64,000 nucleotides of DNA from Tubulanus polymorphus (Eukaryota > Animalia > Nemertea): the NCBI RefSeq assembly GCF_964204645.1, contig NC_134033.1:124001-188000 (forward strand). The letters run 5' to 3'. Shown here one piece after another: positions 18,229-48,050 of this stretch. The notes beneath the pieces are model-generated. The model had not been told where the DNA came from. It did no database searches and worked only from the letters and a program-made list of their open reading frames with translations. Both the position numbers and the translations under genes were made by a program. Numbering within the stretch: position 1 is the stretch's first letter; each line of letters opens with the position of its first letter.

Positions 18229-20039
18229 CTGAGTCTCTCTCAAAATATTCCTCAGTTTAATTCCTAATATTTTATTTATGTAAATTCAACTCGTATAAAC
18301 TATAAAACCGACATAAAAACACAGTTCATCATCGTAACGCAGTTTGTTGTTTTACTGTTACGTAATTTGTATCAGTCAACTAGACACCCAGATTAATGAG
18401 GATGACTGAGGTTTTTTAAAGAGAAATATCGCGCAGAATTTATGCATAAAGCACTATATTGATTGTTGGGTCAAATTAAGTCCAGTCGCGAGTAAATTTA
18501 AGTTGCATTTTGTAACGAGCAAAGTTTAACCTTTACCTTACTTTCTAAATATAGTTCAAGAAAAACATATCCCTAAAGTATAAAACAATAGATCCGTCGT
18601 TGATACAAAAAAAACTTACTTACACAACTGCAACTTTTTCTCAGATTCCGACGTGTATCCAGTGATTATTTAAGTTCATCCAATCCTACGTTTTAAAGTA
18701 AATTTAATTCCGTGTCCAGTCTTAGAATTTTCATGAAATCCATTCACAAAATGGCAATATTTTCATCAAATTTCGATTGAAAATATTCAATTTTTTCACT
18801 CGAAAACCTCCTCTATAACATCTTCTCCGTATTGTATTCCTTTGAGAGTGAAATCCAATCAGAATAGCGAAAGATGCCGCACGATTCGACTGATATTTCG
18901 ATTTATTAATGAAATCGAATTTCCCGGCGCCTGCGACAAGCCCAGACACGCTCCACAGTACGTGGCCGCTGATTGGCTAATCGATCTCAATTGGGGGATA
19001 TCGTCTATTGCTAGTGCACGGGATATTTCAATTGTGGCGTGTTCTATTGTGTTGTTACAATAGGGGGATGAGCTATTGCGACAGCGGGATGCGGGATGGG
19101 CACTTGTTACGTTATCTCTTGAAATATCGAGCCAGGGGTAGTTTCAGCCTTGATACTTTACTGAGTGAGGTGTAAGGGGTGTTTATAAAGGTTTATGGTA
19201 GTTTTTTTATGATATTCCAGAACCGGAACTTGAAGACGCCGACTACCCTCTCACTGGGCGAGTCTATGTTTGTAGAGAGACGGCGTCGTACACGAGACGA
19301 TGTGACATAAAAACTGACTGAAGAAATCATATGGAGGGCATATAATTGTCTCGATAAACTATCGGGCGACGAACGTCCAGCGAACAGGTTCGTAGAGACT
19401 CCTTCGATACGATTAGGCGCTTAATACTGGTCTCATGAGATACTGTTTACATCTACGTCACTTTGAATGATAAATCGGGACTTGGGGTCAAAGTTACTGA
19501 CTGGTCAAAACACGTCAACTTGAACCAGGTAGCAACTGGATTTTTGGAGGTTTTAGTAATATATATAGTAATATTTGAGATGTGGGACCATTCATTCATT
19601 ATGAACCGGGGTTCTCCGTCTCAAACCTCTCAACCCCCCCTCGGTGTGGTCTGATAATAACTTTTAAAGTAAAAATGCAGATATCTTTTCTTAATCTATT
19701 TATAGACCGACTCTGAAGAAGAGGAGAACACAAATAAAAGTTTTCATCATCATCATCATCATCTGCGCGGTCTGAAGTATCTAGAGGTCACCAAGACTCA
19801 ACACCCTTTCATATCATTCGAGGTTAATTTTATATTTCTATGAAATATTTTGCTCAAATAAATTCATTTTGTTTTCATATCAATGAAAATAAGTGTAGTT
19901 ATTCATTTCAGTATGAAATTTGGCTGTTTTGAGGAATTCCTATTTTTCCAGACATCGGATTCAGGATTTCACATTGCCATCACCATGACAACGCACCAAT
20001 CAAAACAAACAACAATCGTTCAGAAATGAAGCCCTGTAG

Positions 20040-20246
20040 GGCTAAACAAAAATTGATACCTTGTTTCCCCGCAGCGGCCGGGTCATTTTTGTAAAATATG
20101 ACAAAATTTGTAATCAGTTCATTTCTACAGCTGCTGGGTCTGTTATGGTAAAATTGGTCACGATTTTTAAAAAATAGTAATGTATAAGGTAGATAGGCGG
20201 GTCAACTTATTAGCTCGAAGAAACAAGGTATCATTTTTTTTTAGCC
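20040..20246. mobile_element. 207-bp MITE (PIF/Harbinger/Tourist-like termini) present only in unit 1
   Basis: 28-bp TIRs GGCTAAACAAAAATTGATACCTTGTTTC / GAAACAAGGTATCATTTTTTTTTTAGCC with a 3-bp TSD TAG. The other units show the empty site CCCTGTAGATTC. Confidence 0.88.
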
Positions 20247-20811
20247 TAGATTCTCAAATTTGGTTTCAAGTTTCTTTATTTTGGTCGAGTAGATTCTGAT
20301 TGATGTAAACTTTACCAGACACTGGTATTATCAAATTCATCTCTGTACTAATAGGATACCTAATTCGTGAAAGGGTTTGAACAGTCACTCAATCAAAACA
20401 AAAAGTTCAGACTCAACTTGAGAAATATTTTGTGTTTATCTAAAATAAATTTCACGTTTTTTTATAATCAAGATATAAATTTCTAAATTTCCAATAGATG
20501 GCGTCTGTGATATACAGTTCAATCCAATAATTTGGTAGCTCAGCAAAATTCCAATAGATGGTGATCATGTCAGTCGTAGTAAATATTTGAAGTATATGAG
20601 ACACCCTGGTTTATCATCTGATCAGAATTACTGGGTTCGAACCTGGGACATCCCTACAAATCCTCTAATCAGCATGAAACATCACAGTCATTTAGAATCA
20701 ATAATTCATTCATTTGACGCGCAGTCAATTTCAGGTTAAGACGTGTCGCAGGTTTCAGTTATTGAGATCCTCCTCCATTAGACTGAAAATAAATCAAACA
20801 ACATTCATTAT

Positions 20812-21403
20812 AACATCATTAGAGCAATTCACAAAAATTATATCAAATATTCGATATAAATAAGAGTAACTAAACGAACCTGATCTAAACATCACCTTCT
20901 TTTGAGTAGAATAAACAAAACTCTAGCGTTACGCCTACATCTGAAATAATACAAAACACTGAAAATCATTATTTCTGCATTGGATACTATATTGAAAACC
21001 AGATTCAACAAGATTCAAAATGCTTTTAGTGCCAAGAATTTTCAGTGTTACAATCTTTCCATACAAGACTTCACGGTAAATTGATCAATGTATCTTCTAG
21101 TTCTTGGATTCAGACTGAATGTGGGGAAAACTTTATGAATTTATTCCCACACCGTCTGAAATAAGAGATTTCACATCGAAATTTTCAGCGTGTTCGTTGC
21201 TCAGCTGCAGGTGAATCGCAACATTCAAACATGTTTGATATTTCCACAGTAAATTTCATCGCAGCAAAATTTTTGTTTAGTCCCAAACACAGTAAATTGA
21301 GCCGCAATCTTTGACAAGCTTTCAAATCATGACAGCATCAATGATTTGAGAACGGCGCTGAAAACCTGCTTGGATTTTGGTTAACTCGGTTTTAAAACAC
21401 CAC
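20812..21403. repeat. ~590-bp direct repeat flanking the RNF19 cassette (left copy)
   Basis: AACATCATTAGAGCAATTCAC...AAAACACCAC recurs at 23527-24106, and likewise in every unit. Confidence 0.9.
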
Positions 21404-21670
21404 AGTTTTTAACTTCGAAACTGTTTCTACAAATCTACTGTGGGTTTTTATTCATCGACTAGAAGTGTTGCAAAGCCGTGCATATCACAGCAGTTTGTGT
21501 CAGTTGCGATCGAAAGCAACTGTTGGCCTACCCTAGGCCAGAGTAGAACACGGGCAACTAGCCCGATACGGCTTGCGACGAGTCGGTAGGCGTCGGGTTG
21601 CCGTCGCAAGCCGGCTTATGTCGAACAGATACAGCAGCAACTGGAGATTGTAGTCGGGAAAATCTCTTAC

Positions 21671-23456
21671 CTGTTTTGGAATCCCCTCGGTCCGGCAACG
21701 GCACTTCCCGATAAACTACCGTCCAAACTGGAGCCAGCAATCGCTCTGTTACTGGCCGATTAGCGATCGCTCTCATCGCGGATTATCCCGACTCGGTCGA
21801 TGTGGCTTCCGCTAGCGCTAAGACTGCCAGTCATAGCCATAGACATCTCACCGATACTAGGTCCGATACTGGGGTTCGCTACCTGGTGACTGGTCGTTTC
21901 TATACTGTGAGAATCAGCTACAACAAATATAAACATTCACTCATACTAGTACTGAATTAACTTAAATGACGTCATAGGGCGATTTATATAGCAGCCACAC
22001 CAGACAACATGGCTTTATCAGTTAATCCCCCTATGACATCATCAAATTATCTTTCTCTTTCTGGCAAGTCTATATAAAACGTAGAAAAGTTGGCCACCTC
22101 CAATAAATCCGCATATGACATCATCAAATTATCCCTTCAGAATCCTAGAAAGACAGCTGATTCCGGACCCTGCGCTATATGAAAAGTATGGTTTAAGTAC
22201 TTACGGGCGTAAGGCCCCGATGGGCCACTTCCTTCGTTCTCTTCGAACTCAAATCAAACTCCGCCCGGAGTTAGTCGTCGATACGCCGCAACCACCGCTG
22301 CGACACAGCGATATCGGTACCACGCCGTAAACATACGCCAATAATATCGGTACACTGATACCAACGGCTAAACTAGCGACAACTGGCGCTACGATAACAG
22401 ACGCAGTTACACCACCGGCTATTACCATATTCCTCTTGTGATGTGGTAGGTGACCGTAACGTGTGTGTAACTGAAACACAAGATAAACACATGAGAAATA
22501 GCATTTTTCATAGTAAAATTTACAATAAAAATCTAGCGCGTGGTGGATTTAGGTTCCAATCTCTGTTTCTGACTAGCGCCATCAAGCGAGTAATTTCAGA
22601 ACTTGAATTTGTCGATATCCTGTATTTCACCCGATAAGCCTTATCATATGTCCTTGTCATTACAGTTAAATGACAGTAACCACTTGATACAGTTTATGCG
22701 CAGTGTTTAGAACTAGGATTTTGACAAAAAATGATTTATTACTTCTAAGTGTTGGTTATTCAACGTCAATCTGTGAATTCAATTCGAATACAGTCTATAT
22801 TCAATCCCAGTTTTTGGCTATATTCAATTATTGAAAAACTGGGATTGGGATGGACTGGTATTGACTTTGTATTGAGTTTTACAGTTGTGTGGGTTTAATT
22901 TCAACATGAAAGGACATTTCAAATGACATAATAAATAATATCTGTAATGAGGCATTCAATGAATGAACACTTTGAATCCCAGTTCATCTGTTTGGGTTAA
23001 ATTCCTTTAGTTCAAAAATTTCCTCAAATTGAAAAACTGTAGTCAGAAAGCTGACCTACCACACATATTAAGCTATCATTTTATGTCTCACGTGGTCACC
23101 CTGTGTGATAGGCCTCACGTATAAAAGACTTTCAGTTATGTGTCCATGCGTATATGTTCTCGGAATTCAGACCAAAAATGACCTTTTGGGCACGAGGCCC
23201 TTGTGACTCGTGTGGAAATATAATAATGATCACTAAATTGAGATTCTCACAGACAGACGGCAGATGGATTCCTAATATTAGTCGATAATTTACCTTGCGT
23301 CCGACCCAGACGGGAATCCCTATGATCATCGCGGGAACTGCGATTCCAGCAACGAGTCCGATACCGACCGGAGCGCCAACTAACGTGACAAGTTGCCACA
23401 ATATCTTCTTCATTCGGCTCCATGGCTTTTTATCCCAGAAAGTGCAGCCAGACGGA
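21671..23456 (-). pseudogene. RNF19: RNF19A/B (Dorfin-like RBR E3 ligase) partial gene copy 1: exons 23294-23456, 22205-22470, 21671-21917
   Basis: Translations [55 protein letters not shown] / [50 protein letters not shown] / NPSIG..MTGSLSASGSHIDRVG match the RNF19 post-RING2 TM and C-terminal region. Introns are GT-AG. A frameshift near 22265 gives TGA at 22249-22251; in-frame TAA at 21760-21762. RING/IBR exons are absent. Confidence 0.92.
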
Positions 23457-23526
23457 CTGAAAATCAACATAATCGACTAAATTATTACTCAATTTCTAAG
23501 GACTTATAAACCTTTATCATCGATTA

Positions 23527-24106
23527 AACATCATTAGAACAATTCACAATCAAATCAAATTAAATCATATCAAATATTCGATATAAATAAGAGTAACTAA
23601 ACAAACCTGATCTAAACATCACCTTCTTTTGAGTAGAATAAACAAAACTCTAGCGTTACGCCTACATCTGAAATAATACAAAACACTGAATATCATTATT
23701 TCTTCATCAGATAAAAAATGAAAACAAATTCAACAAGATTCAAAATGCTTTTAGTGCCAAGAATTTTCAGTGTTACAATTTTTTTTTCATACAAGACTTA
23801 ACGGTAAATTGGTTCAGACTTAGAGCAGGGAACACTATATGAATTTATTCCCACACCGTCTGAAATTACAGATTTCACAATGAAATTTGCAGCGTGTTCG
23901 TTGCTCAGCTGCAGGTGAATCGCAACATTCAAACATGTTTGATATTTCCACAGTAAATTTCATCGCAGCGAAATTTTGCAAAGTCCCAAACACAGTAAAT
24001 TGAGCCGCAATCTTTGACAAGCTTTCAAATCATGATGGCATCAATGATTTGAGAACGGCACTGAAAACCTGCTTGGATTTTGGTAAACTCGATTTTGAAA
24101 CACCAC
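23527..24106. repeat. ~580-bp direct repeat flanking the RNF19 cassette (right copy)
   Basis: Near-identical to 20812-21403. Shortened by ~200 bp in units 2, 3 and 5. Confidence 0.9.
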
Positions 24107-24357
24107 TGAAACTGGTTTCTAGAGGTTTGTGATTAGGGCCTGAGATATATCTACCTGAATTGAGGGATCACTTGTTCACTTCATCGCCGAACAGTTATTC
24201 CTTGAACTTCCTGATGACTGCAGTTAATTAGTAGAGCATCACCCTGAAATAAACATAGAAACCAGTCAGAGAAAGCACTCTTAAATCCAGGGTATCCGCG
24301 GAGTCAAATGCTCCATCTGTATTGATAGTAATAGTTTAGGCCTCGATCCACTCTTTA

Positions 24358-24701
24358 CAGGAGCGGAGCACGTGCTCCTGTCGCAAATTCTGAGTGCCCT
24401 GTTTGAAAAAAGTGCGTAAAAAATTTTTCATTCTATAAAGTTCATTATCACATTGTTTCCATATTAATGAATTCCCATCTCTTAAAGAATTGTTGCAGAA
24501 TGTCATTTTTGTGTCTCAGGTGCCTGGAAATTGCATCAAAATGGGTTGAAATTCAAAAATTTTCTGGGGGAGGTCCGCCAGACCCCCCCGCGAATGCTTC
24601 GCGCCTTCGACGCTCGCCTGTCATGGATAGTGCCATTTCTTTAGATTGCCCTTTTTTTAATTCTGTGCAGCTGTCATTGTCTGCCTCTAGATCTGCCCCT
24701 G
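24358..24701. mobile_element. CAGGGGCGG-type MITE (unit 1)
   Basis: Termini CAGGAGCGGA...TAGATCTGCCCCTG with an internal AAAATTTTCTGGGGGAGG..CCCCCC motif. Lies in a ~440-bp block absent from units 2, 3 and 5. Confidence 0.65.
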
Positions 24702-25596
24702 CTTTATATTATTGATACTTTTTACTGAATGATGGTTTCACAGCACGCATCAGTGAATAGAGATTGCTGCTGCTCGTGGGGTTAAACCGGAGTGTTTTAT
24801 GTCGCTCTCCATCTCGAATCACCTTCATACATCACGAGTATTCGATTCATAAGTAAATTTACTTACTGTATTTCAATGTTGAAATGGTTTGAAGACATTC
24901 TGTCGCTTCTGTGTTGAAAGAGAAGCTTCTAAATATTTCAAGTGAAAATTGGGATTGATTCGTCCGCCATCATTCTTAAATGGGACATACTCCACACTGA
25001 GGAGGGCTAGTTCTGTAGACCGCGCAGATCGAGGTCGACTAGGACTCAGCGGCAAGAGCGCTCCGGGCACCAACGAAAGAGTTCACGGTAGTGCCCGCGG
25101 TAGACTTATCATGCCGCTCTGAATTGATAGTTGCGGGAAATAATACCACGAAATTAGAAATTTGTAGCGATTTCCGTGCAATAGTTGAACAGATGAATGT
25201 CCTACTAAAATCCTGCAACAAATTGGCATCAATCTGAACGGGATAAATACGTCCGGACACAAACACCGACGATTGACTGGGTGTAAAACGGGACTTCCCG
25301 GTTGGAGTAAACCTCTAACAGGTGGTGCTCCGGTAGATTTTGTGAAACAGCTGATGACATTTTCATGATCTTTAGACGAGTTTGATCGCCGTTTTACCGT
25401 CGTGGAATGGCACCTATTGTGAAAACTGATTAGGTGTGAAGTGATGCAATGACATTCAGTTGAAGTCAAACGACGAGAAGGGCTCCGAGACTGATGTGGA
25501 CTTTACGAGAGGAATAAACTATTTTTGAGAAGGTATCAAGATGGATCTGGCACAGAGCCAAAGCCGGCAAACTGACTTATGAATTCTATTTCTGTG

Positions 25597-25668
25597 TTGT
25601 TGATAATCTCGCGAGACAAGCGCTAATATTGTATAAATCTAGTTTCGTTCTCGCGAGATTATCAACAA
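25597..25668. promoter_or_regulatory. 20-bp perfect inverted repeat, each arm containing the palindrome TCTCGCGAGA (copies at 30898-30969, 36235-36306, 42150-42221)
   Basis: TTGTTGATAATCTCGCGAGA ... TCTCGCGAGATTATCAACAA, ~630 bp upstream of the - strand ATGGCGG exon. The regulatory role is inferred. Confidence 0.4.
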
Positions 25669-25852
25669 TCCGGAAATAAAGTGCAACCTGATTTAGAAGG
25701 CCCGCCCAGCCTGGGGGCGCAAACCCTATTGATATTGATGAAAGCAAAATACTTGACTGTTTTTAGAGTAAAAATACAGATATCTTTTCTTCATCTATTT
25801 ATAGACTGATTCTGAAGAAGAGGAGAACACAAATAACAGTTTTCATCATCAC

Positions 25853-25886
<34 letters not shown>

Positions 25887-27602
25887 TGTGCGGTCTGAAG
25901 TATCTAGAGGTCACCAAGACTCAACATTACCCCTTTCATATCATTCGAGGTCAAGTTCTATATTTATGTGACAAATATCTATGAAACATTTTGCTCAAAT
26001 AAATTCATTCTGTTTTCATATGGATGAAAATAAGTGTAGTTATTCATTTCAGTTTTAAATTCGTCTCTGTTTTGAGGAATTACTATTTTCCCCGAACTCA
26101 GATCCAGAATATCACCTTGCCATCACCATGACAACGCACCAGTCAAAACAAACAAATATCATTCAGAAATGAAGCCCTGTAGATTCTTGGTTTCAAGTTA
26201 CTCTATTTTGGTTGAGTAGATTCTGAATGATGCAAAGTTAACTAGAGACACTGGTTTTACCAAAATCATCTCTGGAAGACAGTGCCAATCCTGGAAGGGT
26301 TTTAACAGTCACTCAGATATTGTGTTCCACTGCATTCAGATCAAACCAACAGTTCACACTCAATTTGAGAAATATTTTGTCTTAATGTAAAATAAATTTC
26401 ACGTTTAATTTGACACTGAAGATATAAATTTCTAAATTTCCAATAGATGGCACCTGTGATATACAGTATATTCGTAGTAATCCAATAATTTGGTGGTTCA
26501 GCAGAAATCCAATAGGTGGCGATCATGTCGTAATAACTATTCATCAGTATATATCAGACACCCTGGTTTATCATCTGATCAAAATCACTGGTTTTGAACT
26601 TGGAACATCCTAAAAATCCTCTAAACAGCATGAAACATCACAGTCATTTAGAATCAATAATTCATTCATTTGACGCGCAGTCAATTTCAGGTTAAGACGT
26701 GTCGCAGGTTTCAGTTATTGAGATCCTCCTCCATTAGACTGAAAATAAATCAAACAACATTCATTATAACATCATTAGAGCAATTCAAAAAAATCATATC
26801 AAATATTCGATATAAATAAGAGTAACTAAACAAACCTGATTTAAACATCACCTTCTTTTGAGAAGAATAAACAAAACTCTAGCGTTACGCCTACATCTGA
26901 AATAATACAAAACACTGAATATCATTATTTCTTCATCAGATAAAAAATGAAAACAGATTCAACAAGATTCAAAATGCTTTTAGTGCCAACAATTTTCAGT
27001 GTTAATATCTTTTTTTCATACAAGACTTAACGGTAAATTGGTTCAGACTTAGAGCAGGGAACACTATATGAATTTATTCCCACATCGTCTGAAATTACAG
27101 ATTTCACAATGAAATTTGCAGCGTGTTCGTTGCTCAGCTGCAGGTGAATCGCACCATTCAAACATGTTTGATATTTCCACAGTTAATTTCATCGCAGCAA
27201 AATTTTTGTTTAGTCCCAAACACAGTAAATTGAGCCGCAATCTTTGACAAGCTTTCAAATCATGACGGCATCAATGATTTGAGAACGGCGCTGAAAACCT
27301 GCTTGGATTTCGGTTAACTCTGTTTTAAAACACCACAGTTTTTAACTTCAAAACTGTTTCTACAAATCTACTGTCGGTTTTTATTCATCGACTAGAAGTG
27401 GTGCAACGCCGTGCATATCACAGCAGTTTGTGTCAGTTGCATTGAAAGCAACTGTTGGCCTACCGTAGGCCGGAGTAGAACACGGGCAACTAGCCCAATA
27501 CGGCTTGCGACGAGTCGGTAGGCGTCGGGTTGCCGTTGCAAGCCGGCTTACGTCGAACAGATAGAGCAGCAACTGGAGATTGTAGTCGGGAAAATCTCTT
27601 AC

Positions 27603-29375
27603 CTGTTTTGGAATCCCCTCGGTCCGGCAACGGCACTTCCCGATAAACTACCGTTCAAACTGGAGCCAGCAATCGCTCTGTTACTGGCCGATTAGCGATC
27701 GCTCTCATCGCGGATTATCCCGACTCGGTCGATGAGGCTTCCGCTAGCGCTAAGACTGCCAGTCATAGCCATAGACATCTCACCGATACTAGGTCCGATA
27801 CTGGGGTTCGCTATCCGGTGACTGGTCGTTTCTATACTGTGAGAATCAGCTACAACAAATATAAACATTCACTCATACTAGTACTGAATTAACTTAAATG
27901 ACGTCATAGGGGGATTCATATAGCAGCCACACCAGACAACATGGCTTTATCAGTCAATCCCCTTATGACATCATCAAATTATCTTTCTCTTTCTGGCAAG
28001 TCTATATAAAACGTAGAAAAGTTAGCCACCTCCAATAAATCCGCCTATGACATCATCAAATTATCCCTTCAGAATCCTAGAAAGACAGCTGATTCCGGAC
28101 CCTGCACTATATGAAAAGTATGGTTTAAGTACTTACGGGCGTAAGGCCCCGATGGGCCACTTCCTTCGTTCTGTTCGAACTCAAATCGAACTCCGCCCGG
28201 AGTTAGTCGTCGATACGCCGCAACCACCGCTGCGACACAGCGATATCGGTACCACGCCGTAAACATACGCCAATAATATCGGTACACCGATACCAACGGC
28301 TAAACTAGCGACAACTGGCGCTACGATAACAGACGCAGTTACACCACCGGCTATTACCATATTCCTCTTGTGCTGTGGTAGGTGACCGTAACGTGTGTGT
28401 AACTGAAACACAAGATAAACACATGAGAAATAGCATTTTTCATAGTAAAATTTGCAATAAAAATCTAGCGCGTGGTGGATTTAGGTTCCAATCTCTGTTT
28501 CTGACTAGCGCCATCAAACGAGTAATTTCAGAACTTGAATTTGTCGATATCCTGTATTTCACCCGCTAAGCCTTATCATATGTCCTTGTCATTACGGTTA
28601 AATGACAGTAACCACTTGATACAGTTTATGCGCAGTATTTAGAACTAGGATTTTGACAAAAAAGGATTTATTACTTCTAAGTGTTGGTTATTCAACGTCA
28701 CTCTGTGAATTCAATTCGAATACAGTCTATATTCAATCCCAGTTTTTGGCTATATTCAATTATTGAAAAACTGGGATTGGGATTGACTGGAATTGACTTT
28801 GTATTGAGTTTAACAGTTGTGTGGGTTTAATTTCAACATGAAAGGACATTTCAAAGGACATAATGATATCTGTAATGAGGCATTCAATGAATGAACACTT
28901 TGAATCCCAGTTCATCTGTTTGGGTTAAATTTCTTTAGTTCAAAAATTTCCTCAAATTGAAAAACTGTAGTCAGAAAGCTGACCTACCACACATATTAAG
29001 CTATCATTTTATGTCTCACGTGGTCACCCTGTGTGGTAGGCCTCACGTATAAAAGACTTTCAGTGTCCATGCGTATATGTACTCGGAATTCAGACCAAAA
29101 ACGACCTTTTGGGCACGAGGCCCTTGTGACTCGTGTGGAAATATAATAATGATCACTAAATTCAGATTCTCACAGACAGACGGCAGATGGATTCCTAATA
29201 TTAGTCGATAATTTACCTTGCGTCCGACCCAGACGGGATCCCTATGATCATCGCGGGAACTGCGACTCCAGCAACGAGTCCGATACCGACCGGAGCGCCA
29301 ACTAACGTGCCGAGTTGCCACAATATCTTCTTTCGGCTCCATGGCTTTTTACCCCAGAAAGTGCAGCCAGACGGA
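27603..29375 (-). pseudogene. RNF19: RNF19 partial gene copy 2
   Basis: Same three exons with the shared frameshift and TAA. Extra 1-bp deletion in the first exon (CGGGATCCC vs CGGGAATCCC, ~29238). Confidence 0.92.
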
Positions 29376-31142
29376 CTGAAAATCAACATAATCGACTAAA
29401 TTATTACTCAATTTCTAAGGACTTATAAACCTATATCATCGATTAAACATCATTAGAGCAATTCACAATCAAATCAAATTAAATCATATCAAATATTCGA
29501 TATAAATAAGAGTAACTAAACAAACCTGATCTAAACATCACCTTCTTTTGAGTAGAATAAACAAAACTCTAGCGTTACGCCTACATCTGAAATAATACAA
29601 AACACTGAAAATCATTATTCCTTCATCAGATAAAAAATGAAAACAGATTCAACAAGATTCAAAATGCTTTTAGTCTCAAGAATTTTCAGTGTCACAATCT
29701 TTTTTTCATACAAGACTTAACGGTAAATTGGTTCAGACTTAGAGCAGGGAACACTATATCTTTGAAAATATGTTGGCATCAATGATTTGAGAACGGCGCT
29801 GAAAACCTGCTTGGATTTTGGTTAACTCGATTTTAAGACATCACTGAAACTGGTTTCTAGAGGTCTGTGATTCGGGCCTGAGATATATCTACCTGAATTG
29901 AGGGATCACTTGTTCACTTCATCGCCAAACAGTTATTCCTTGAACTTCCTGATGACTGCAGTTAATTAGTAGAGCTTCACCCTGAAATAAACATAGAAAC
30001 CTGTCAGAGAAAGCACTTTTTACTGAATGACGGTTTTACAGCACGCATCAGTGAATAGAGATCGCTGCTGCTCGTGGGGTTAAACCGGAGTGTTTTATGT
30101 CGCTCTCCATCTCGAATCACCTTCATACATCACAAGTATTCGATTCATAAGTAAATTTACTTACTGTATTTCAATGTTGAAATGGTTTGAAGACATTCTG
30201 TCGCTTCTGCGTTGAAAGAGAAGCTTCTAAATATTTCAAGTGAAAATTGGGATTGATTCGTCCGCCATCATTCTTAAATGGGACATACTTCACTTGGGAG
30301 GGCTAGTTCTGTAGACCGCGCAGATCGAGGTCGACTAGGACTCAGCGGCAAGAGCGCTCCGGGCACCGACTAAAGAGTTCACGGTAGTGCCCGCGGTAGA
30401 CTTAACATGCCGCTCCGAATTGATAGTTGCTGGAAATAATACCACGAAATTAGAAATTTGTAGCGATTTCCGTGCAATAGTTGAACAGATGAATGTCCTA
30501 CTAAAATCCTGCAACAAATTGGCATCAATCTGAACGGGATAAATAAGTTCATACACAAACACCGTCCTATGGACTGGGTGTAAAGCGGGACTCGACACTT
30601 CCCGGTTGGAGTAAATATCTAACAGGTGGTGCTCCGGTAGATTTTGTGAAACAGCTGATGACATTTTCATGATCTTTAGACGAGTTTGATCGCCGTTTTA
30701 CCGTCGTGGAATGGCACCTATTGTGAAAACTGATTAGGTGTGAAGTGATGCAATGACATTCAGTTGAAGTCAAACGACGAGAAGGGCTCCGAGACTGATT
30801 TGGACTTTACGAGAGGAATAAACTATTTTTGAGGTATCAAGATGGATCTGGCACAGAGCCAAAGCCGGCAAACTGACTTATGAATTTTATTTCTGTGTTG
30901 TTGATAATCTCGCGAGACAAGCGCTAATATTGTATAAATCTAGTTTCGTTCTCGCGAGATTATCAACAATCCGGAAATAAAGTGCAACCTGATTTAGAAG
31001 GCCCGCCCAGCCCGGGGGCGCAAACCCTATTGATATTGATGAAAGCAAAATACTTGACTGTTTTTAGAGTAAAAATACAGATATCTTTTCTTCATCTATT
31101 TATAGACTGATTCTGAAGAAGAGGAGAACACAAATAACAGTT

Positions 31143-31143
<1 letters not shown>

Positions 31144-31196
<53 letters not shown>
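31144..31196. repeat. (CAT)n microsatellite; length differs per unit (also ~19745, 25843, 36482, 42396)
   Basis: About 17 repeats here versus about 6-14 in the paralogous units. Confidence 0.95.
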
Positions 31197-34710: not shown

Positions 34711-37700
34711 CTGAAAATCAACATAATCGACTAAATTATTACTCAATTTCTAAGGACTTATAAACCTTTATCATCGATTAAACATCATTAGAGCAATTCA
34801 CAATCAAATCAAATTAAATCATATCAAATATTCGATATAAATAAGAGTAACTAAACGAACCTGATCTAAACATCACCTTCTTTTGAGTAGAATAAACAAA
34901 ACTCTAGCGTTACGCCTACATCTGAAATAATACAAAACACTGAAAATCATTATTCCTTCATCAGATAAAAAATGAAAACAGATTCAACAAGATTCAAAAT
35001 GCTTTTAGTGTCAAGAATTTTCAGTGTCACAATCTTTTTTTCATACAAGACTTAACGGTAAATTGGTTCAGACTTAGAGCAGGGAACACTATATCTTTGA
35101 AAATATGTTGGCATCAATGATTTGAGAACGGCGCTGAAAACCTGCTTGGATTTTGGTTAACTCGATTTTAGGACACCACTGAAACTGGTTTCTAGAGGTC
35201 TGTGATTCGGGCCTGAGATATATCTACCTGAATTGAGGGATCACTTGTTCACTTCATCGCCAAACAGTTATTCCTTGAACTTCCTGATGACTGCAGTTAA
35301 TTAGTAGAGCTTCACCCTGAAATAAACATAGAAACCTTTCAGAGAAAGCACTTTTTACTGAATGACGGTTTTACACGCATCAGTGAATAAAGATTGCTGC
35401 TGCTCGTGGGGTTAAACCGGAGTGTTTTATGTCGCTCTCCATCTCGAATCACCTTCATACATCACAAGTATTCGATTCATAAGTAAATTTACTTACTGTA
35501 TTTCAATGTTGAAATGGTTTGAAGACATTCTGTCGCTTCTGCGTTGAAAGAGAAGCTTCTAAATATTTCAAGTGAAAATTGGGATTGATTCGTCCGCCAT
35601 CATTCTTAAATGGGACATACTCCACACTGAGGAGGGCTAGTTCTGTAGACCGCGCAGATCGAGGTCGACTAGGACTCAGCGGCAAGAGCGCTCCGGGCAC
35701 CGACTAAAGAGTTCACGGTAGTGCCCGCGGTAGACTTTACATGCCGCTCCGAATTGATAGTTGCTGGAAATAATACCACGAAATTAGAAATTTGTAGCGA
35801 TTTCCGTGCATTAGTTGAACAGATGAATGTCCTACTAAAATCCTGCAACAAATTGGCATCAATCTGAACGGGATAAATACGTCCGGACACAAACACCGTC
35901 CGATTGACTGGGTGTAAAGCGGGACTCGACACTTCCCGGTTGGAGTAAACATCTAACAGGTGGTGCTCCGGGAGATTTTGTGAAACAGCTGATGACATTT
36001 TCATGATCTTTAGACGAGTTTGATCGCCGTTTTACCGTCGCTGAATGGCACCTATTGTGAAAACTGATTAGGTGTGAAGTGATGCAATGACATTCAGTTG
36101 AAGTCAAACGACGAGAAGGGCTCCGAGACTGATTTGGACTTTACGAGAGGAATAAACTATTTTTGAGAAGGTATCAAGATGGATCTGGCACAGAGCCAAA
36201 GCCGGCAAACTGACTTATGAATTTTATTTCTGTGTTGTTGATAATCTCGCGAGACTAGCGCTAATATTGTATAAATCTAGTTTCGTTCTCGCGAGATTAT
36301 CAACAATCCGGAAATAAAGTGCAACCTGATTTAGAAGGCCCGCCCGGCCCGGGGGCGCAAACCCTATTGATATTGATGAAAGCAAAATACTTGACTGTTT
36401 TTAGAGTAAAAATACAGATATCTTTTCTTCATCTATTTATAGACTTATTCTGAAGAAGAGGAGAACACAAATAACAGTTTTCATCATCATCATCATCATC
36501 ATCATCATCTGCGCGGTCTAAAGTATCTAGAGGTCACCCAGACTCAACATTACCCCCTTCATATCATTCGAGGTCAAGTTCTATATTTATGTGACAAATA
36601 TCTATGAAGTATTTTGCTCAAATAAATTCATTCTGTTTTCATATCGATGAAAATAAGTGTAGTTATTCATTTCAGTTTTAAATTCGTCTCTGTTTTGAGG
36701 AATTACTATTTTTCCCGACATCAGATCCAGAATATCACCTTGCCATCACCATGACAACGCACCAGTCAAAACAAACAACAATCATTCAGAAATGAAGCCC
36801 TGTAGATTCTTGGTTTCAAGTTTCTCTATTTTGGTTGAGTAGATTCTGAATGATGCAAAGTTAACTAAGACACTGGTTTTATCAAAATCATCTCTGGAAG
36901 ACAGTGCCAATCCTGGAAGGGTTTTAACAGTCACTCAGATATCGTGTTCCACTGCATTCAGATCAAACCAACAGTTCACACTCAACTTGAGAACTATTTT
37001 GTCTTAATGTAAAATAAATTTCACGTTTAATTTGACACTGAAGATATAAATTTCTAAATTTCCAATAGATGGCACCTGTGATATACAGTATATTCGTATT
37101 AATCCAATAATTTGGTGGTTCAGCAGAAATCCAATAGGTGGCGATCATGTCGTAATAACTATTCATCAGTATATATCAGACACCCTGGTTTATCATCTGA
37201 TCAAAATCACTGGGTTTGAACTTGGAACATCCTAAAAATCCTCTAAACAGCATGAAACATCACAGTCATTTAGAATCAATAATTCATTCATTTGACGCGC
37301 AGTCAATTTCAGGTGTAGACGTGTCGCAGGTTTCAGTTATTGAGATCCTCCTCCATTAGACTGAAAATAAATCAAACAACATTCATTATAACATCATTAG
37401 AGCAATTCACAAAAATCATATCAAATATTCGATATAAATAAGAGTAACTAAACAAACCTGATCTAAACATCACCTTCTTTTGAGAAAAATAACCAAAACT
37501 CTAGCGTTACGCCTACATCTGAAATAATACAAAACACTGAAAATCATTATTTCTTCATCAGATAAAAAATGAAAACAGATTCAACAAGATTCAAAATGCT
37601 TTTAGTGTCAAGAATTGTCAGTGTTACAATTGTTTTTTCCTACAAGACTTAACGGTAAATTGGTTCAGACTTAGAGCAGGGAACACTATATGAATTTATT

Positions 37701-38227
37701 CCCACACCGTCTGAAATTACAGATTTCACAATGAAATTTGCAGCGTGTTCGTTGCTCAGCTGCAGGTGAATCGCACCATTCAAACATGTTTGATATTTCC
37801 ACAGTAAATTTTGTCGCAGCAAATATTTTTGCTAAGTCCCAAACACAGTAAATTGAGCCGCAATCTTTGACAAGCTTTCAAATCATGACGGCATCAATGA
37901 TTTGAGAACGGCGCTGAAAACCTGCTTGGATTTCGGTTAACTCGGTTTTAAAACACCACAGTTTTTAACTTCGAAACTGTTTCTACAAATCTACTGTGGG
38001 TTTTTTATTCGTCGACTAAAAGTGGTGCAACGCCGTGCATATCACAGCAGTTTGTGTCAGTTGCGATCGAAAGCAACTGTTGGCCTACCGTAGGCCGGAG
38101 TAGAACACGGGCATCTAGCCCGATACGGCTTGCGACGAGTCGGTAGGCGTCGGGTTGCCGTCGCAAGCCGGCTTATGTCGAACAGATAGAGCAGCAACTG
38201 GAGATTGTAGTCGGGAAAATCTCTTAC

Positions 38228-40023
38228 CTGTTTTGGAATCCGCTCGGTCCGGCAACGGCGCTTCCTGATAAACTACCGTTCAAACTGGAGCCAGCAATCG
38301 CTCTGTTACTGGCCGATTAGCGATCGCTCTCATCGCGGATTATCCTGACTCGGTCGATGTGGCTTCCGCTAGCGCTAAGACTGCCATTCATAGCCATAGA
38401 CATCTCACCGATACTAGGTCCGATACTGGGGTTCGCTACCCGGTGACTGGTCGTTTCTATACTGTGAGAATCAGCTACAACAAATATAAACATTCACTCA
38501 TACTAGTACTGAACTAACTTAAATGACGTCATAGGGGGATTTATATAGCAGCCACACCAGACAACATGGCTTTATCAGTTAATCCCCCTATGACATCATC
38601 AAATTATCTTTCTCTTTCTGGCAAGTCTATATAAAACGTAGAAAAGTTGGCCACCTCCAATAAATCCCCCTATGACATCATCAAATTATCCCTTATGAAT
38701 CCTAGAAAGACAGCTGATTCCGGACCCTGCACTATATGAAAAGTATGGTTTAAGTACTTACGGGCGTAAGGCCCCGATGGGCCACTTCCTTCGTTCTGTT
38801 CGAACTCAAATCGAACTCCGTCCGGAGTCAGTCGTCGATACGCCGCAACCACCGCTGCGACACAGCGATATCGGTACCACGCCGTAAACATACGCCAATA
38901 ATATCGGTACACCGATACCAACGGCGACAACTAGCGACAACTGGCGCTACGATAACAGACGCAGTTACACCACCGGCTATTACCATATTCCTCTTGTGCT
39001 GTGGTAGGTGACTGTAACGTGTATGTAACTGAAACACAAGATAAACACATGAGAAATAGCATTTTTCATAGTAAAATTTGCGATAAAAATCTAGCGCGTG
39101 GTGGATTTAGGTTCCAATTTCTGTTTCTGACTAGCGCCATCAAGCGAGTAATTTCAGAACTTGAATTTGTTGATATCCTGTATTTCACCCGATAAGCCTT
39201 ATCATATGTCCTTGTCATTACGGTTAAATGACAGTAACCACTTGATACAGTTGATGCGCAGTGTTTAGAACTAGGATTTTGACAAATAAAATCAATAAGG
39301 ATTTATTACTTCTAAGTGTTGGTTATTCAACGTCACTCTGTGAATTCAATTCGAATACAGTCTATATTCAATCCCAGTTTTTGGCTATATTCAATTATTG
39401 AAAAACTGGGATTGGGATTGACTGGAATTGACTTTGTATTGAGTTTTACAGTTGTGTGGGTTTAATTTCAACATGAAAGGACATTTCAAATGACATAATA
39501 AATAATATCTGTAATGAGGCATTCAATAAATGAACACTTTGAATCCCAGTTCATCTGTTTGGGTTAAATTCCTTTAGTTCAAAAATTTCATCAAATTGAA
39601 AAACTGTAGTCAGAAAGCTGACCTACCACACATATTAAGCTATCATTTTATGTCTCACGTGGTCACCCTGTGTGGTAGGCTTCACGTATAAAAGACTTTC
39701 AGTTATGTGTCCATGCGTATATGTTCTCGGCATTCAGACCAAAAACGACCTTTTGGGCACGAGGCCCTTGTGATTCGTGTGGAAATATAATAATGATCAC
39801 TAAATTGAGATTCTCACAGACAGACGGCAGATGGATTCCTAATATTAGTCGATAATTTACCTTGCGTCCGACCCAGACGGGAATCCCTATGATCATCGCG
39901 GGAACTGCGATTCCAGCAACGAGTCCGATACCGACCGGAGCGCCAACTAACGTGCCGAGTTGCCACAATATCTTCTTCATTCGGCTCCATGGCTTTTTAT
40001 CCCAGAAAGTGCAGCCAGACGGA
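38228..40023 (-). pseudogene. RNF19: RNF19 partial gene copy 4
   Basis: Same exons and shared lesions, plus an extra +1 frameshift at ~38926 (ACGGCGACAACTAG vs ACGGCTAAACTAG). Confidence 0.92.
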
Positions 40024-40919
40024 CTGAAAATCAACATAATCGACTAAATTATTACTCAATTTCTAAGGACTTATAAACCTTTATCATCGATTAAACATCA
40101 TTAGAGCAATTCACAATCAAATCAAATTAAATCATATCAAATATTCGATATAAATAAGAGTAACTAAACGAACCTGATCTAAACATCACCTTCTTTTGAG
40201 TTGAATAAACAAAACTCTAGCGTTACGCCTACATCTGAAATAATACAAAACACTGAATATCATTATTTCTTCATCAGACAAAAAATGAAAACAGATTCAA
40301 CAAGATTCAAAATGCTTTTAGTGCCAAGAATTTGTTACAATCTTTTTCTCATACAAGACTTAACGGTAAATTGGTTCAGACTTAGAGCAGGGAACACTAT
40401 ATGAATTTATTCCCACACCGTCTGAAATTACAAATTTAACAATGAAATTTTCAGCGTGTTCGTTGCTCAGCTGCAGGTGAATCGCACCATTCAAACATGT
40501 TTGATATTTCCACAGTAAATTTCATCGCAGCGAAATTTTGCAAAGTCCCAAACACAGTAAATTGAGCCGCAATCTTTGACAAGCTTTCAAATCATGATGG
40601 CATCAATGATTTGAGAACGGCGCTGAAAACCTACTTGGATTTTGGTTAACTCTGTTTTAAAACACCACTGAAACTGGTTTGTAGAGGTCTGTGATTAGGG
40701 CCTAAGATATATCTACCTGAATCGAGGGATCACTTGTTCACTTCATCGCCAAACAGTTATTCCTTGAACTTCCTGATGACTGCAGTTAATTAGTAGAGCA
40801 TCACCCTGAAATAAACATAGAAACCTGTCAGAGAAAGCACTCTAAAATCCAGGGTATCCACGGAGTCAAATGCTCCATCTGTATTGATAGTAATAGTTTA
40901 GGCCTCGATCCACTCTTTA

Positions 40920-41248
40920 CAGGGGCGGAGCACGTGCTCCTGTCGCAAATTCTGAGTGCCCTGTTTGAAAAAAGTGCGTAAAAAATTTTTCATTCCATAA
41001 AGTTCATTATCACATTGTTTCCATATTAATAAATTCCCATCTCTTAAAGAATTGTTGCAGAATGTCATTTTTGTGTCTCAGGTGCCTGGAAATTGCATTA
41101 AAATAGGTTGAAATTCAAAAATTTTCTGGGGGCCCCGCGAATGCTTCGCGCCTTCGACGCTCGCCTGTCATGGATAGTGCCATTTCTTTAGATTGCCCTT
41201 TTTTTAATTCTGTGCAGCTGTCATTGTCTGCCTCTAGATCTGCCCCTG
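40920..41248. mobile_element. CAGGGGCGG-type MITE (unit 4)
   Basis: Termini CAGGGGCGGA...GATCTGCCCCTG; paralogous to 24358-24701. Confidence 0.7.
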
Positions 41249-44129
41249 CTTTATATTATTTATACTTTTTACTGAATGATGGTTTCACAGCACGCATCAG
41301 TGAATAGAGATTGCTGCTGCTCGTGGGGTTAAACCGGAGTGTTTTATGTCGCTCTCCATCTCGAATCACCTTCATACATCACAAGTATTCGATTCATAAG
41401 TAAATTTACTTACTGTAATTCAATGTTGAAATGGTTTGAAGACATTCTGTCGCTTCTGCGTTGAAAGAGAAGCTTCTAAATATTTCAAGTGAAAATTGGG
41501 ATTGATTCGTCCGCCATCATTCTGAAATGGGACATACTTCACTTGGGAGGGCTAGTTCTGTAGACCGCGCAGATTGAGGTCGACTAGGACTCAGCGGCAA
41601 GAGCGCTCCGGGCACCGACTAAAGAGTTCACGGTAATGCCCGCGGTAGACTTAACATGCCGCTCCGAATTGATAGTTGCGGGAAATAATACCACGAAATT
41701 AGAGATTTGTAGCGATTTCCGTGCATTAGTTGAACAGATGAATGTCCTACTAAAATCCTGCAACAAATTGGCATCAATCTGAACGGGATAAATACGTCCG
41801 GACACAAACACCGTCCGATTGACTGGGTGTAAAGCGGGACTCGACACTTCCCGGTTGGAGTAAACATCTAACAGGTGGTGCTCCGGGAGATTTTGTGAAA
41901 CAGCTGATGACATTTTCATGATCTTTAGACGAGTTTGATCGCCGTTATACCGTCGTGGAATGGCACCTATTGTGAAAACTGATTAGGTGTGAAGTGATGC
42001 AATGACATTCAGTTGAAGTCAAACGACGAGAAGGGCTCTGAGACTGATGTGGACTTTACGAGAGGAATAAACTATTTTTGAGAAGGTATCAAGATGGATC
42101 TGGCACAGAGCCAAAGCCGGCAAACTGACTACTGAATTTTATTTCTGTGTTGTTGATAATCTCGCGAGACTAGCGCTAATATTGTATAAATCTAGTTTCG
42201 TTCTCGCGAGATTATCAACAATCCGGAAATAAAGTGCAACCTGATTTAGAAGGCCTGCCCGGCCCGGGGGCGCAAACCCTATTGATATTGATGAAAGCAA
42301 AATACTTGACTGTTTTTAGAGTAAATATACAGATATCTTTTCTTCATCTATTTATAGATTGATTCTGAAGAAGAGGAGAACACAAATAACAGTTTTCATC
42401 ATCATCATCATCATCTGTGCGGTCTGAAGTATCTAGAGGTCACCAAGACTCAACACCCCTTCATATCATTCGAGGTCAAGTTCTATATTTATGTGACAAA
42501 TATCTATGAAGTATTTTGCTCAAATAAATTCATTCTGTTTTCATATCGATGAAAATAAGTGTAGTTATTCATTTCAGTTTTAAATTCGTCTCTGTTTTGA
42601 GGAATTACTATTTTTCCCGACATCAGATCCAGAATATCACCTTGCCATCACCATGACAACGCACCAGTCAAAACAAACAACAATCATTCAGAAATGAAGC
42701 CCTGTAGATTCTTGGTTTCAAGTTTCTCTATTTTGGTTGAGTAGATTCTGAATGATGCAAAGTTAACTAAGACACTGGTTTTATCAAAATCATCTCTGGA
42801 AGACAGTGCCAATCATGGAAGGGTTTTAACAGTCACTCAGATATTGTATTCCACTGCATTCAGATCAAACCAACAGTTCAGACTCAACTTGAGAACTATT
42901 TTGTCTTAATGTAAAATAAATTTCACGTTTAATTTGACACTGAAGATATAAATTTCTAAATTTCCAATAGATGGCACCTGTGATATACAGTATATTCGTA
43001 TTAATCCAATAATTTGGTGGTTCAGCAGAAATCCAATAGGTGGCGATCATGTCGTAATAACTATTCATCAGTATATATCAGACACCCTGGTTTATCATCT
43101 GATCAAAATCACTGGGTTTGAACTTGGAACATCCTAAAAATCCTCTAAACAGCATGAAACATCACAGTCATTTAGAATCAATAATTCATTCATTTGACGC
43201 GCAGTCAATTTCAGGTTAAGACGTGTCGCAGGTTTCAGTTATTGAGATCCTCCTCCATTAGACTGAAAATAAATCAAACAACATTCATTATAACATCATT
43301 AGAGCAATTTCACAAAAATCATAGTAAATATTCGATATAAATAAGAGTAACTAAACGAACCTGATCTAAACATCATCTTCTTTTGAGTAGAATAAACAAA
43401 ACTCTAGCGTTACGCCTACATCCGAAATAATACAAAACACTGAATATCATTATTTCTTCATCAGATAAAAAATGAAAACAGATTCAACAAGATTCAAAAT
43501 GCTGTTAGTGTCAAGAATTTTCAGTGTTACAATCTTTTTTTCATACAAGACTTAACGGTAAATTGGTTCAGACTTAGAGCAGGGAACACTATATGAATTT
43601 ATTCCCACACCGTCTGAAATTACAGATTTCACAATGAAATTTGCAGCGTGTTCGTTGCTCAGCTGCAGGTGAATCACAACATTCAAACATGTTTGATATT
43701 TCCACAGTTAATTTTGTCGCAGCAAATATTTTTGTTTAGTCCCAAACACAGTAAATTGAGCCGCAATCTTTGACAAGCTTTCAAATCATGATGGCATCAA
43801 TGATTTGAGAACGGCGCTGAAAACCTGCTTGGATTTTGGTAAACTCGATTTTAAAACACCGCAGTTTTTAACTTCGAAACTGTTTCTACAAATCTACTGT
43901 GGGTTTTTATTCATCGACTAGAAGTGGTGCAAAGCCGTGCATATCACAGCAGTTTGTGTCAGTTGCGATTGAAAGCAACTGTTGGCCTACCGTAGGCCGG
44001 AGTAGAACACGGGCAACTAGCCCGATACGGCTTGCGACGAGTCGGTAGGCGTCGGGTTGCCGTCGCAAGCCGGCTTATGTCGAACAGATAGAGCAGCAAC
44101 TGGAGATTGTAGTCGGGAAAATCTCTTAC

Positions 44130-45907: not shown

Positions 45908-46428
45908 CTGAAAATCAACATAATCGACTAAATTATTACTCAATTTCTAAGGACTTATAAACCTTTATCATCGATTAAACATCATTAGAGCAATTCACAA
46001 TCAAATCAAATTAAATCATATCAAATATTCGATATAAATAAGAGTAACTAAACAAACCTGATCTAAACATCACCTTCTTTTGAGTAGAATAAACAAAACT
46101 CTAGCGTTACGCCTACATCCGAAATAATACAAAACACTGAAAATCATTATTTCTTCATCAGATAAAAAATGAAAACAAATTCAACAAGATTCAAAATGCT
46201 TTTAGTGCCAAGAATTTGTTACAATCTTTTTTTCATACAAGACTTAGGCTAACGGTTAATTGGTTCAGACTTAGAGCAGGGAACACTATATCTTTGAAAA
46301 TATGTTGGCATCAATGATTTGAGAACGGCGCTGAAAACCTGCTTGGATTTTGGTTAACTCGGTTTTAAAACACCACTGAAACTGGTTTCTAGAGGTCTGT
46401 GATTAGGGCCTAAGATATATCTACCTGA

Positions 46429-46793
46429 TAGAACGATGACCGCACTCAAACGTGGTGAACGGATAATAAGATAAAATCCCACTATTTACAGATTAAAAGA
46501 ATTTAAAAACAAGAATTATTTATTAAATCTAAAATATTTAAAAGACACAACGTTTCGATCTCACCCTAGAGATCATCGTCAGGTGTGAATTATTATCAGG
46601 TGTGATTTATTTCATCGCATAATCTACAAATTCAATCTTCAGTTTAACAGTGAAATCAAAATTCATAAATTAAAACCCTGACGATGATCTCTAGGGTGAG
46701 ATCGAAACGGCGTGTCTTTTAAATATTTTAGATTTAATAAATAATTCTTGTTTTTAAATTCTTTTAATCTGTAAATAGTGGGATTTTATCTTA
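46429..46793. mobile_element. Penelope-like element-derived palindromic insertion
   Basis: 12-bp TSD ATATCTACCTGA (46417-46428 / 46794-46805). 117-bp inverted arms at 46467-46583 and 46677-46793 carry a hammerhead core. Absent from units 1-4. Confidence 0.8.
46545..46586 (-). ncRNA. Minimal type-I hammerhead ribozyme motif (Penelope pLTR type)
   Basis: - strand reads ACAC-CUGACGA-U-GAUCUC-UAGGGU-GAGAUC-GAAAC-GUU-GUGU: conserved core, 6-bp helix II, 4-bp helix I, palindromic ACGU in place of helix III. Confidence 0.7.
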
Positions 46794-48050
46794 ATATCTA
46801 CCTGAATTGAGGGATCACTTGTTAACTTCATCGCCAAACAGTTATTCCTTGAACTTCCTGATGACTGCAGTTAATTAATAATATTAGTAGAGCTTCACCC
46901 TGACATAAACATAGAAACCTGTCAGAGAAATCACTCTTTACTGAATGATGGTTTTACAGCACGCATCAGTGAATAGAGATCGCTGCTGCTCGTGGGGTTA
47001 AACCGGAGTGTTTTATGTCGCTCTCCATCTCGAATCACCTTCATACATCACAAGTATTCGATTCATAAGTAAATTTACTTACTGTATTTCAATGTTGAAA
47101 TGGTTTGAAGACATTCTGTCGCTTCTTCGTTGAAAGAGAAGCTTCTAAATATTTCAAGTGTAAATAGCGATTTATTCGTCCGCCATGCTAGTTCTGCAGA
47201 CCGCGCAGCTCGAGGTCGACTCGGACTCAGGCTTTGCGCTCCGAGCACCAACTAAAGAGTTCACGGTTCTAGCCGCGGATGGCTTTAGATACCGCTCCGG
47301 ATTACTAGGGGGTAATGAATTCCACGGAATTAGCAATACGTAGCAATTCTAATGAACTTCCGAGCTATTGTTCGAATAAAACATTCTAAAATTATTCCCA
47401 ATTAATAAAACAATCAAATAATCTTATAAGTTGAATTGGTGACTCACAACACGTATTTAACCTAATAGTTTTTTTCAGCGGGGCACGTCTGAGAGTATCG
47501 ACAAGTTTTGTATTTCTTTAACAAATATCTGTGAAATTTTTTGCTAAAATAAATTCATTCTGTTATTAAATCGATGAAAATAAGTGTAGTTATTCATTTC
47601 ACTATGAAATTTGGCTCTGTTTTCAGGAATTACTATTTTTCCAGACATCGGATTCAGAATATCACATTGCTATCACCATGACAACGCACCAGTCAAAACA
47701 AACAACAATCATTCAGAAATGAAGCCCTGTAGATTCTTGGTTTCAAGTTTCTCTATTTTGGTTGAGTAGATTCTGAATGATGCAAAGTTTACTAGAGACA
47801 CTGGTTTTATCAAAATCATCTCTGGGGGACAGTGCCAATCCTGGAAGGGTTTTAACAGTAACTCAGATATCGTGTTCCACTGCATTCAGATCAAAACAAA
47901 CAGTTCACACTCAACTTGAGAAATATTTTGTGTGTATCTAAAATAAATTTTACGTTTATTTTGACACCAAGACAATAGGTGGCGTAGTCATCTTCTGGTA
48001 GAAACTTTGGTCTCAAGAATTTAAGTTTAAGAAAATATTTAAAAAACAGA

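Follow-up and report, generated by a model that had tools for sequence, protein, structure and literature searches.

Results

Five tandem units carry the middle part of an RNF19B-like gene

The window analysed here is a stretch of 64,000 nucleotides from the nemertean Tubulanus polymorphus (TaxID 672921; C9:124001-188000, C9 being NC_134033.1), and it was searched against the whole assembly of 268 Mb in 77 contigs. Repeats make up nearly everything between its first and last positions, and its - strand holds a tandem array whose units carry a middle piece of an RNF19B-like gene within another repeated sequence (Table 1). The first-pass annotation of this DNA, which worked from the letters alone, had described five units at 19661-47985 in which transmembrane exons of RNF19 were captured in sense, with native introns and with the catalytic part missing, inside a small spliced non-coding gene. 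Self-BLAST places the five tandem units at 19662-47985, and each part of unit 1 was found on the - strand exactly where it had been put. Within the window the units are mutually 92-97% identical. The greater length of units 1 and 4 is due to the insertion of a dispersed repeat of about 340 bp, which marks them as a higher-order pair with a period of 16.55 kb; other copies of this repeat (90-94% identity) are found on C1, C3, C5, C8 and C11, and it resembles a short interspersed element or a miniature inverted-repeat transposable element.

The exons were translated and searched singly, and a six-frame genome search using exon 5 returned a single match outside the arrays, at C8:1608600. This locus is the intact parent for which the first-pass annotation had proposed a genome search: it encodes XP_074656228.1, an intact RNF19B-like protein of 864 amino acids (aa), over 7 coding exons (C8:1603188-1611775), with a RING domain at aa 124-172 and IBR matches at aa 192-257 and 285-322 according to Pfam. 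The insert corresponds to 2.06 kb of parental DNA (about 2.1 kb in the unit). It runs from the final 72 bp of intron 3 through exons 4-6 (aa 330-555), with introns 4 and 5 between them, into intron 6, of which approximately 465 bp are included. Its assignment to RNF19 stands on a DNA identity of 92-95% to the parent and on exact exon matches to the 864-aa RefSeq protein. The 675 nt of exon sequence in the copies are 95-97% identical to the parental exons, and the membrane helices and the region following them are 94-97% identical to the RNF19B-like protein of T. polymorphus. Parental exons 1-3, encoding RING1-IBR-RING2, and the last exon (exon 7, the C-terminal 309 residues) are absent from the insert, in agreement with the loss of the catalytic part proposed at first, and Pfam found no domain, RING and IBR included, in two unit-derived proteins. 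An RBR ligase is expected to possess the catalytic RING1-IBR-RING2 module and two helices continuing in frame to a C-terminal tail. The units copy exons 4-6 only, and while some of them keep the helices, the frame is cut in 24 of the 24 copies sampled at the DNA level on C9, C8, C45, C32 and C10; the loci at C10:14.04-14.09 Mb, C54, C65 and the ends of C7 and C11 enter as counts from the genome search tables only.

The lesions of the coding sequence can be followed exon by exon. In unit 1 a K>M change in exon 4 (23413-23411) creates the ATG used by the predicted protein XP_074657951.1. Exon 5 bears an insertion of one C, near 22268 in unit 1, that is found family-wide and leads to a TGA at 22251-22249, and exon 6 bears an in-frame TAA (21762-21760, GAA>TAA) which is present in 16 of 23 sampled copies. 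An extra frameshift in exon 5 of unit 4 abolishes the second helix, and unit 5 has a 3-nt deletion in the same exon. Intron 4 of the copies contains about 480 bp that are not in the parent and that derive partly from a dispersed repeat and partly from sequence matching C8 at 1.02 and 1.07 Mb: 236 bp of it (window 22860-23095) match C8:1020091-1020318 and C8:1068441-1068645 at 87-88%. The unit has therefore collected DNA from at least one further locus on the parent's chromosome arm.

The insert interrupts a repeated host sequence

The RNF19 insert is flanked by two direct copies of a host segment of about 0.58 kb (A and A' in Table 1). Comparison of the unit with parent and host gives a 5' junction that reads host ...CTAATGATGTT / TAATCGATGA... 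parent and a 3' junction that reads parent ...GTTAAAA / CTGTGGTG... host; at these junctions homology amounts to a few bases at most, and neither terminal inverted repeats, nor hairpin ends, nor a short target duplication were seen. The uninterrupted host, with a single A segment and no RNF19, was found at four loci (C4:27.28 Mb, C7:21.20 Mb, and C10:14.00 and 14.10 Mb), so that the proposed capture inside another repeated sequence can be upheld. All four empty sites sit in collinear blocks, at least 6-8 kb long, whose mutual identity is 96-98%. A processed retrocopy would have lost its introns; here, both introns and the adjoining intron pieces are still present, with 88-95% identity to the parent. 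Since junction homology is near zero and a target duplication of about 0.58 kb stands on both sides, break repair or template switching fits, and a transposon or a retrocopy does not.

It is in this light that capture and dispersal of the gene piece by a transposable element appears most unlikely, whether the carrier be Helitron-like, Pack-MULE-like or Penelope-like, with the host as a non-autonomous element. Even at loci without RNF19, the host consists of a full unit with partial units on either side, which recalls the partial tandem organisation of Penelope-like elements, and the end of unit 1 combines AATAAA (20280-20275) with an A-rich stretch; this AATAAA is found in unit 1 only, the remaining units having AATAGA. 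Such a scenario is at odds with the bare junctions described above and with the retained introns, which imply that the copy was not RNA-mediated. In addition, all the host copies lie in larger collinear duplicons of chromosome ends instead of unrelated unique flanks, no dispersed copy lying in unique DNA, with defined ends and a target-site duplication, was seen, the unit holds no open frame for a reverse transcriptase or transposase, and Rfam at its gathering threshold reports no family over the whole window, hammerhead ribozymes included.

Putative host exons are not more constrained than their flanks

In the exon scheme of the first-pass annotation, the host break falls inside the 113-bp interval from the 45-nt segment to the terminal segment, and the join would therefore be intron-to-intron on both sides. 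That scheme also held that the GT/AG sites were kept in all five copies. This does not stand, because unit 5 has lost three of them, by AG>GG at both 45-nt segments (43423, 46120) and by GT>AT at one (43376). Changes at splice sites thus affect 3 of 112 bases (2.7%), to be compared with an overall divergence of 3-8% between units; as this rate matches neutral drift, the retention of the sites is uninformative on their use. The occurrence of the same AG>GG in both duplicates of unit 5 suggests gene conversion between the flanking duplicates within the unit. Segment comparison gave an identity of 99.5% for the 45-nt segment against 94-97% elsewhere, and we considered this as a possible sign of function; it was dismissed, since the density of variable sites equals that of the flanks and 10 of 50 copies carry a change at the G of the donor. 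The host 'exons' are without constraint beyond their flanks. Every open frame that reaches 70 aa in unit 1 or in the DNA flanking it derives from RNF19 or from repeats, and the CpG profile at 'exon 1', inspected as a check for a promoter island, was uninformative.

About 29 copies of single origin lie near chromosome ends

The amplification had been taken for five-fold and local. Our six-frame search shows a larger family of about 29 array copies of exon 5, on seven contigs and all 91-100% identical at the protein level. Both a 40-mer spanning the 3' junction and the insertion of a C at about nt 203 of exon 5 occur in 24 of 24 sampled copies, the frame ending with ...SGRSSI* just after the second membrane helix, and these two shared characters point to a single capture followed by spread. 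In a tree, all copies form one clade versus the parent, and the five window units group together with one C8 unit among them. Exon 4 is present in 14 of the sampled copies and exon 5 in 24, so unit variants without exon 4 exist. The capture is young, as was proposed from the start: the copies differ by 1-3%.

With the exception of a match at C6:9.50 Mb, host pieces are situated about 0-450 kb from contig ends (C1, C4, C7, C10, C11, C16) or on small unplaced contigs. Arrays of (TTAGGG)n are seen at contig ends, and the 64-kb window itself is devoid of telomere repeats. Copies are thus found at the ends of several chromosomes, in high-identity blocks longer than the element and of mosaic structure, and we consider, with a probability of roughly 80%, that the locus belongs to a subtelomeric duplicon family of T. 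polymorphus in which a trapped piece of RNF19 has become a family of chimeric pseudogenes.

The proposed adjacency to a satellite block is also borne out. The 102-bp satellite at the start of the window extends at least 10 kb further upstream (C9:114001-124000), for a total of at least 24 kb, and the order of satellite, 4-kb flank (window 15715-19519, 93-96% identical) and RNF19 array is repeated on C45 (satellite at C45:2550-3065), where the array units measure 3.7 kb. On the small contig C16, positions 948-1482 are 100% identical to window 20200-20734, which is probably assembly redundancy. One could go further and regard the whole array as an artefact of collapsed or falsely expanded repeats or haplotigs, given this identity with part of unit 1 and given that C45 could be an alternative haplotype of the window. 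We find this barely credible: private indels, insertions of dispersed repeats and a palindrome set the units apart in addition to a divergence of 3-8%, and the copies on the large contigs C8, C9 and C10 are structurally distinct.

RNF19 exons drift after amplification

Once amplified, the membrane-coding part has accumulated 24 non-synonymous or stop variants versus 11 synonymous ones (pN/pS of about 0.76), and the untranslatable part past the frameshift 31 versus 18 (about 0.51). Identity across copies is 0.965-0.970 for exons and 0.961-0.962 for introns, and the membrane-coding part has been hit by one stop and by frameshifts that arose independently at least six times. Among the window units, the first helix is missing from unit 2 and the second from unit 4, and the K>M start codon exists only in units 1 and 4. 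A conserved new gene would keep its open frame under purifying selection, and neither was found; the RNF19 exons now drift neutrally, as non-coding DNA. The catalytically dead membrane peptide envisaged by the first-pass annotation consequently gives way to a pseudogene as far as the RNF19 part is concerned, and a conserved peptide is unlikely because of the shared frameshift, the exon-6 TAA, the independent frameshifts and the absence of any synonymous excess.

A young functional family deserves nonetheless to be weighed, in which chimeric mRNAs would encode a small membrane protein of one or two helices, that is, an RNF19 hairpin without ligase that could disturb, or imitate, the way RNF19 is anchored in the membrane. 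The ATG of unit 1 lies directly ahead of the first helix and opens a 113-aa frame across both helices, the common frameshift truncates the product neatly past the second one, RefSeq predicts such proteins at many units, and non-synonymous changes fixed before amplification number zero. We nevertheless hold it to be very unlikely: the membrane-coding part does not show a lower pN/pS than the untranslatable one, the frameshifts and the stop destroy one or both helices, in units 2 and 4 of the window among others, only two of the five window units possess the ATG, the start codons and lengths of the RefSeq models vary from one unit to the next, and many units have no exon 4.

RefSeq models and possible transcription

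When RefSeq proteins were matched to the window exon by exon, models of 83-134 aa named 'RNF19A/B-like' coincided exactly with units 1, 2, 3 and 5, and more are found on C8 and C32. Their coding parts use solely RNF19 exons 4-5(-6) or an exon within the extra intron sequence. As regards the latter, window 22628-22657, in the additional sequence of intron 4, holds the frame MTRTYDKAYR followed by GT, which on C8 is the alternative first coding exon in RefSeq (XP_074656182/83, 83 aa). Multi-isoform models spanning the exon 4-5 junction hint at transcription. Because the native splice sites are mostly intact, transcription and splicing of the units probably yield chimeric RNAs, for the most part without function.

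The naming of the models may tell more. NCBI's pipeline has its own practice for naming transcript variants, and it is on this practice that we base the following reading: three transcripts with one coding sequence, 'isoform X1/X2' naming across units 1-2 and consecutive accessions suggest transcript evidence and one RefSeq gene extending over both units, which would imply read-through between them. Read-through or antisense transcription of the array could in turn generate small RNAs, 95-97% identical to the RNF19 exons, that tune the parent, in the way that the Su(Ste) repeats regulate Stellate in Drosophila. The many tandem copies in repeat-rich chromosome ends, with 675 nt of exon sequence so close to the parent, would suit such a source. 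However, the window contains no inverted whole units, its sole palindrome spanning 122 nt in unit 5, and the locus is indistinguishable from any other transcribed pseudogene array; a role as a small-RNA source is therefore judged highly unlikely.

Two inverted repeats were recorded along the array. The palindrome of unit 5 (46462-46583 / 46677-46798, 122 nt, 98% complementary, 93-nt loop) is an inverted duplicate of the region of the 89-nt segment, and an inverted repeat of 37 nt (84% complementary, 32-nt loop; 25580-25616 / 25649-25685 in unit 1) lies upstream of 'exon 1' and is conserved across units. Beyond the array, no long open frame other than repeats was found between 48 and 64 kb of the window.

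Table 1. Features of the 64-kb window and of the RNF19 family elsewhere in the assembly. Positions are those of the window unless a contig is named.
Feature	Position	Strand	Description and source
102-bp satellite	1..14779	.	408-bp higher order near inner edge; repeat analysis of window
Tandem array	19662..47985	-	5 full units and a partial unit at each end (19662-20039, 47502-47967); self-BLAST
Unit 1	20260..26186	-	5927 bp; self-comparison
Units 2-5	26187-31496, 31497-36809, 36810-42711, 42712 to ~47740	-	periods 5310, 5313, 5902 and ~5.0-5.3 kb; self-comparison
Putative 'exon 1'	24867..24970	-	ATGGCGGACGAA at 24970-24959; ends ACA, GTAAGT donor after 24867; motif check
~340-bp dispersed repeat within 'intron 1'	24363..24701 (unit 1), ~40.9-41.3 kb (unit 4)	-	units 1 and 4 only; genome search
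Putative 89-nt 'exon'	24155..24243	-	AG 24245-24244, GT 24154-24153; motif check
Host segment A	23527..24106	-	upstream copy of ~0.58-kb target duplication; includes 45-nt 'exon' 23667-23623; self-comparison
RNF19-derived insert, unit 1	21406..23526	-	copy of parent C8:1608018-1610079, 88-95% DNA identity
RNF19 exon 4 copy (first membrane helix), unit 1	23294..23456	-	other units: 29375-29217 (frameshift 142delT), 34710-34551, 40023-39861, 45907-45748
RNF19 exon 5 copy (second membrane helix), unit 1	22206..22470	-	other units: 28402-28137, 33707-33446, 39028-38762, 44926-44664
RNF19 exon 6 copy, unit 1	21671..21917	-	other units start 27849, 33158, 38474, 44376
Host segment A'	20812..21405	-	downstream copy; includes duplicate 45-nt 'exon' 20940-20896; self-comparison
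Putative terminal 'exon'	20260..20782	-	strong acceptor AG 20784-20783; motif check
XP_074657951.1, unit 1	23413-23294 + 22470-22252		113 aa
XP_074657948/49/50.1, unit 2	29342-29217 + 28402-28184		115 aa
XP_074658241.1, unit 3			134 aa
XP_074658200.1, unit 5			84 aa
Minisatellite run (48.6 to 61.8 kb)	53414-56721, 58964-59476, 60087-60677, 61384-61840, 49684-50030		respectively 34-bp x 97, 14-bp x 37, 23-bp x 26, 24-bp x 19, 20-bp x 17
Exon-5 copies by contig	C9, C8, C10, C32, C45, C54, C65		respectively 5, 6, 6, 5, 4, 2, 1
Family/host positions, C8, C9, C10	C8 50-92 kb; C9 144-171 kb; C10 last 300 kb and 36 kb		
Family/host positions, C7, C4	C7 first 9 kb and last 420 kb; C4 0.43 and 27.28 of 27.38 Mb		
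Family/host positions, C1 and others	C1 31.86 Mb; starts of C11, C16; C32, C45, C54, C65		C1 telomere at 32.06 Mb; C32 to C65 are small contigs

Discussion

The evidence gathered above leads us to see the locus as a set of chromosome-end duplicons that trapped a gene piece. The scenario we favour starts with one genomic copy of exons 4-6 of the RNF19B-like gene, introns included, pasted once into a repeated chromosome-end sequence, with break repair or template switching as the likely route of capture. The +1 frameshift just past the second membrane helix was acquired before multiplication; unequal crossing-over was then probably responsible for the tandem multiplication, and ectopic exchange probably for the spread between chromosome ends. 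The locus reveals no new kind of element or mechanism.

Two observations weigh against this scenario. Over 675 exon bases, the parent is separated from all the copies by 14 fixed and 3 nearly fixed differences, all of which are synonymous changes at third positions; purifying selection was therefore still acting on the donor lineage very shortly before amplification. In our reading, the piece was captured from a functional allele differing silently from the reference allele, though the copy itself might conceivably have had a brief functional phase. The second observation concerns the 5' junction, which turned up in the five units of the window and in a single C8 unit but nowhere else, the remaining units being rearranged upstream.

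Subtelomeric duplicon families at human and yeast chromosome ends carry gene fragments and pseudogenes, and the present family shares with them blocks that are 92-98% identical and common to many ends, a mosaic and variable structure, the vicinity of satellites and minisatellites, trapped gene pieces, and tandem as well as inter-chromosomal exchange. It departs from them by the nature of the trapped fragment, a piece of RNF19 whose splice sites and one open frame are good enough to have elicited protein calls in RefSeq. To our knowledge nothing of this kind has been described in nemerteans, a phylum that has been little studied, and our literature search found no genome paper for T. polymorphus.

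Other chimeric genes and pseudogenes provide further points of comparison. Human chimeric pseudogenes that arose by segmental duplication with intron fusion are in some cases expressed and under purifying selection (PMC13122177). Like them, the RNF19 units consist of a partial gene copy with introns, joined intron-to-intron to unrelated sequence, with a potential for chimeric transcripts and for short truncated proteins keeping a parental domain; unlike those cases, their pattern of substitutions looks like neutral decay. The 'tinkering loci' of Drosophila, where ectopic recombination at transposons drives the process (bioRxiv 10.64898/2026.08.09.743762), are likewise repeat-rich regions that collect gene fragments, and here too more than one locus contributed, as the 236-bp piece from C8 indicates; re-transcription is a feature of the Drosophila loci. 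The RNF19 junctions differ from them in having no transposon and little homology, and the fragment has been amplified about 29-fold. Sdic of Drosophila melanogaster similarly combines parts of two loci in a chimeric unit that was amplified a handful of times in tandem. Its product is a functional sperm protein whose effects on fitness are documented (PMC7475035), whereas the RNF19 units have a frameshift in common, are further disrupted independently of one another and bear no mark of constraint. As for RNF19A and RNF19B themselves, which are RBR E3 ligases, the units are without RING1, IBR, RING2 and the C-terminal 309 residues, hence without a catalytic part.

It is tempting to ask whether the roughly 29 units, if transcribed and partly read through, might regulate the single RNF19B-like gene, either via small RNAs or via a membrane-hairpin micro-protein made from the few open copies. 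We regard this as improbable; were it true, the subtelomere would have given birth to a regulator out of a gene fragment. A more immediate consequence concerns annotation. At least 11 RefSeq accessions of T. polymorphus (8 distinct sequences) that derive from broken fragments bear the name 'RNF19A/B-like' and make the RNF19 family look larger than it is; these mis-named entries should be taken as a warning. Above all, the locus offers a clean and datable nemertean case of chromosome ends trapping and multiplying gene pieces, in which one capture, both junctions, an identifiable empty site, the intact parent and about 29 descendants have been preserved together.

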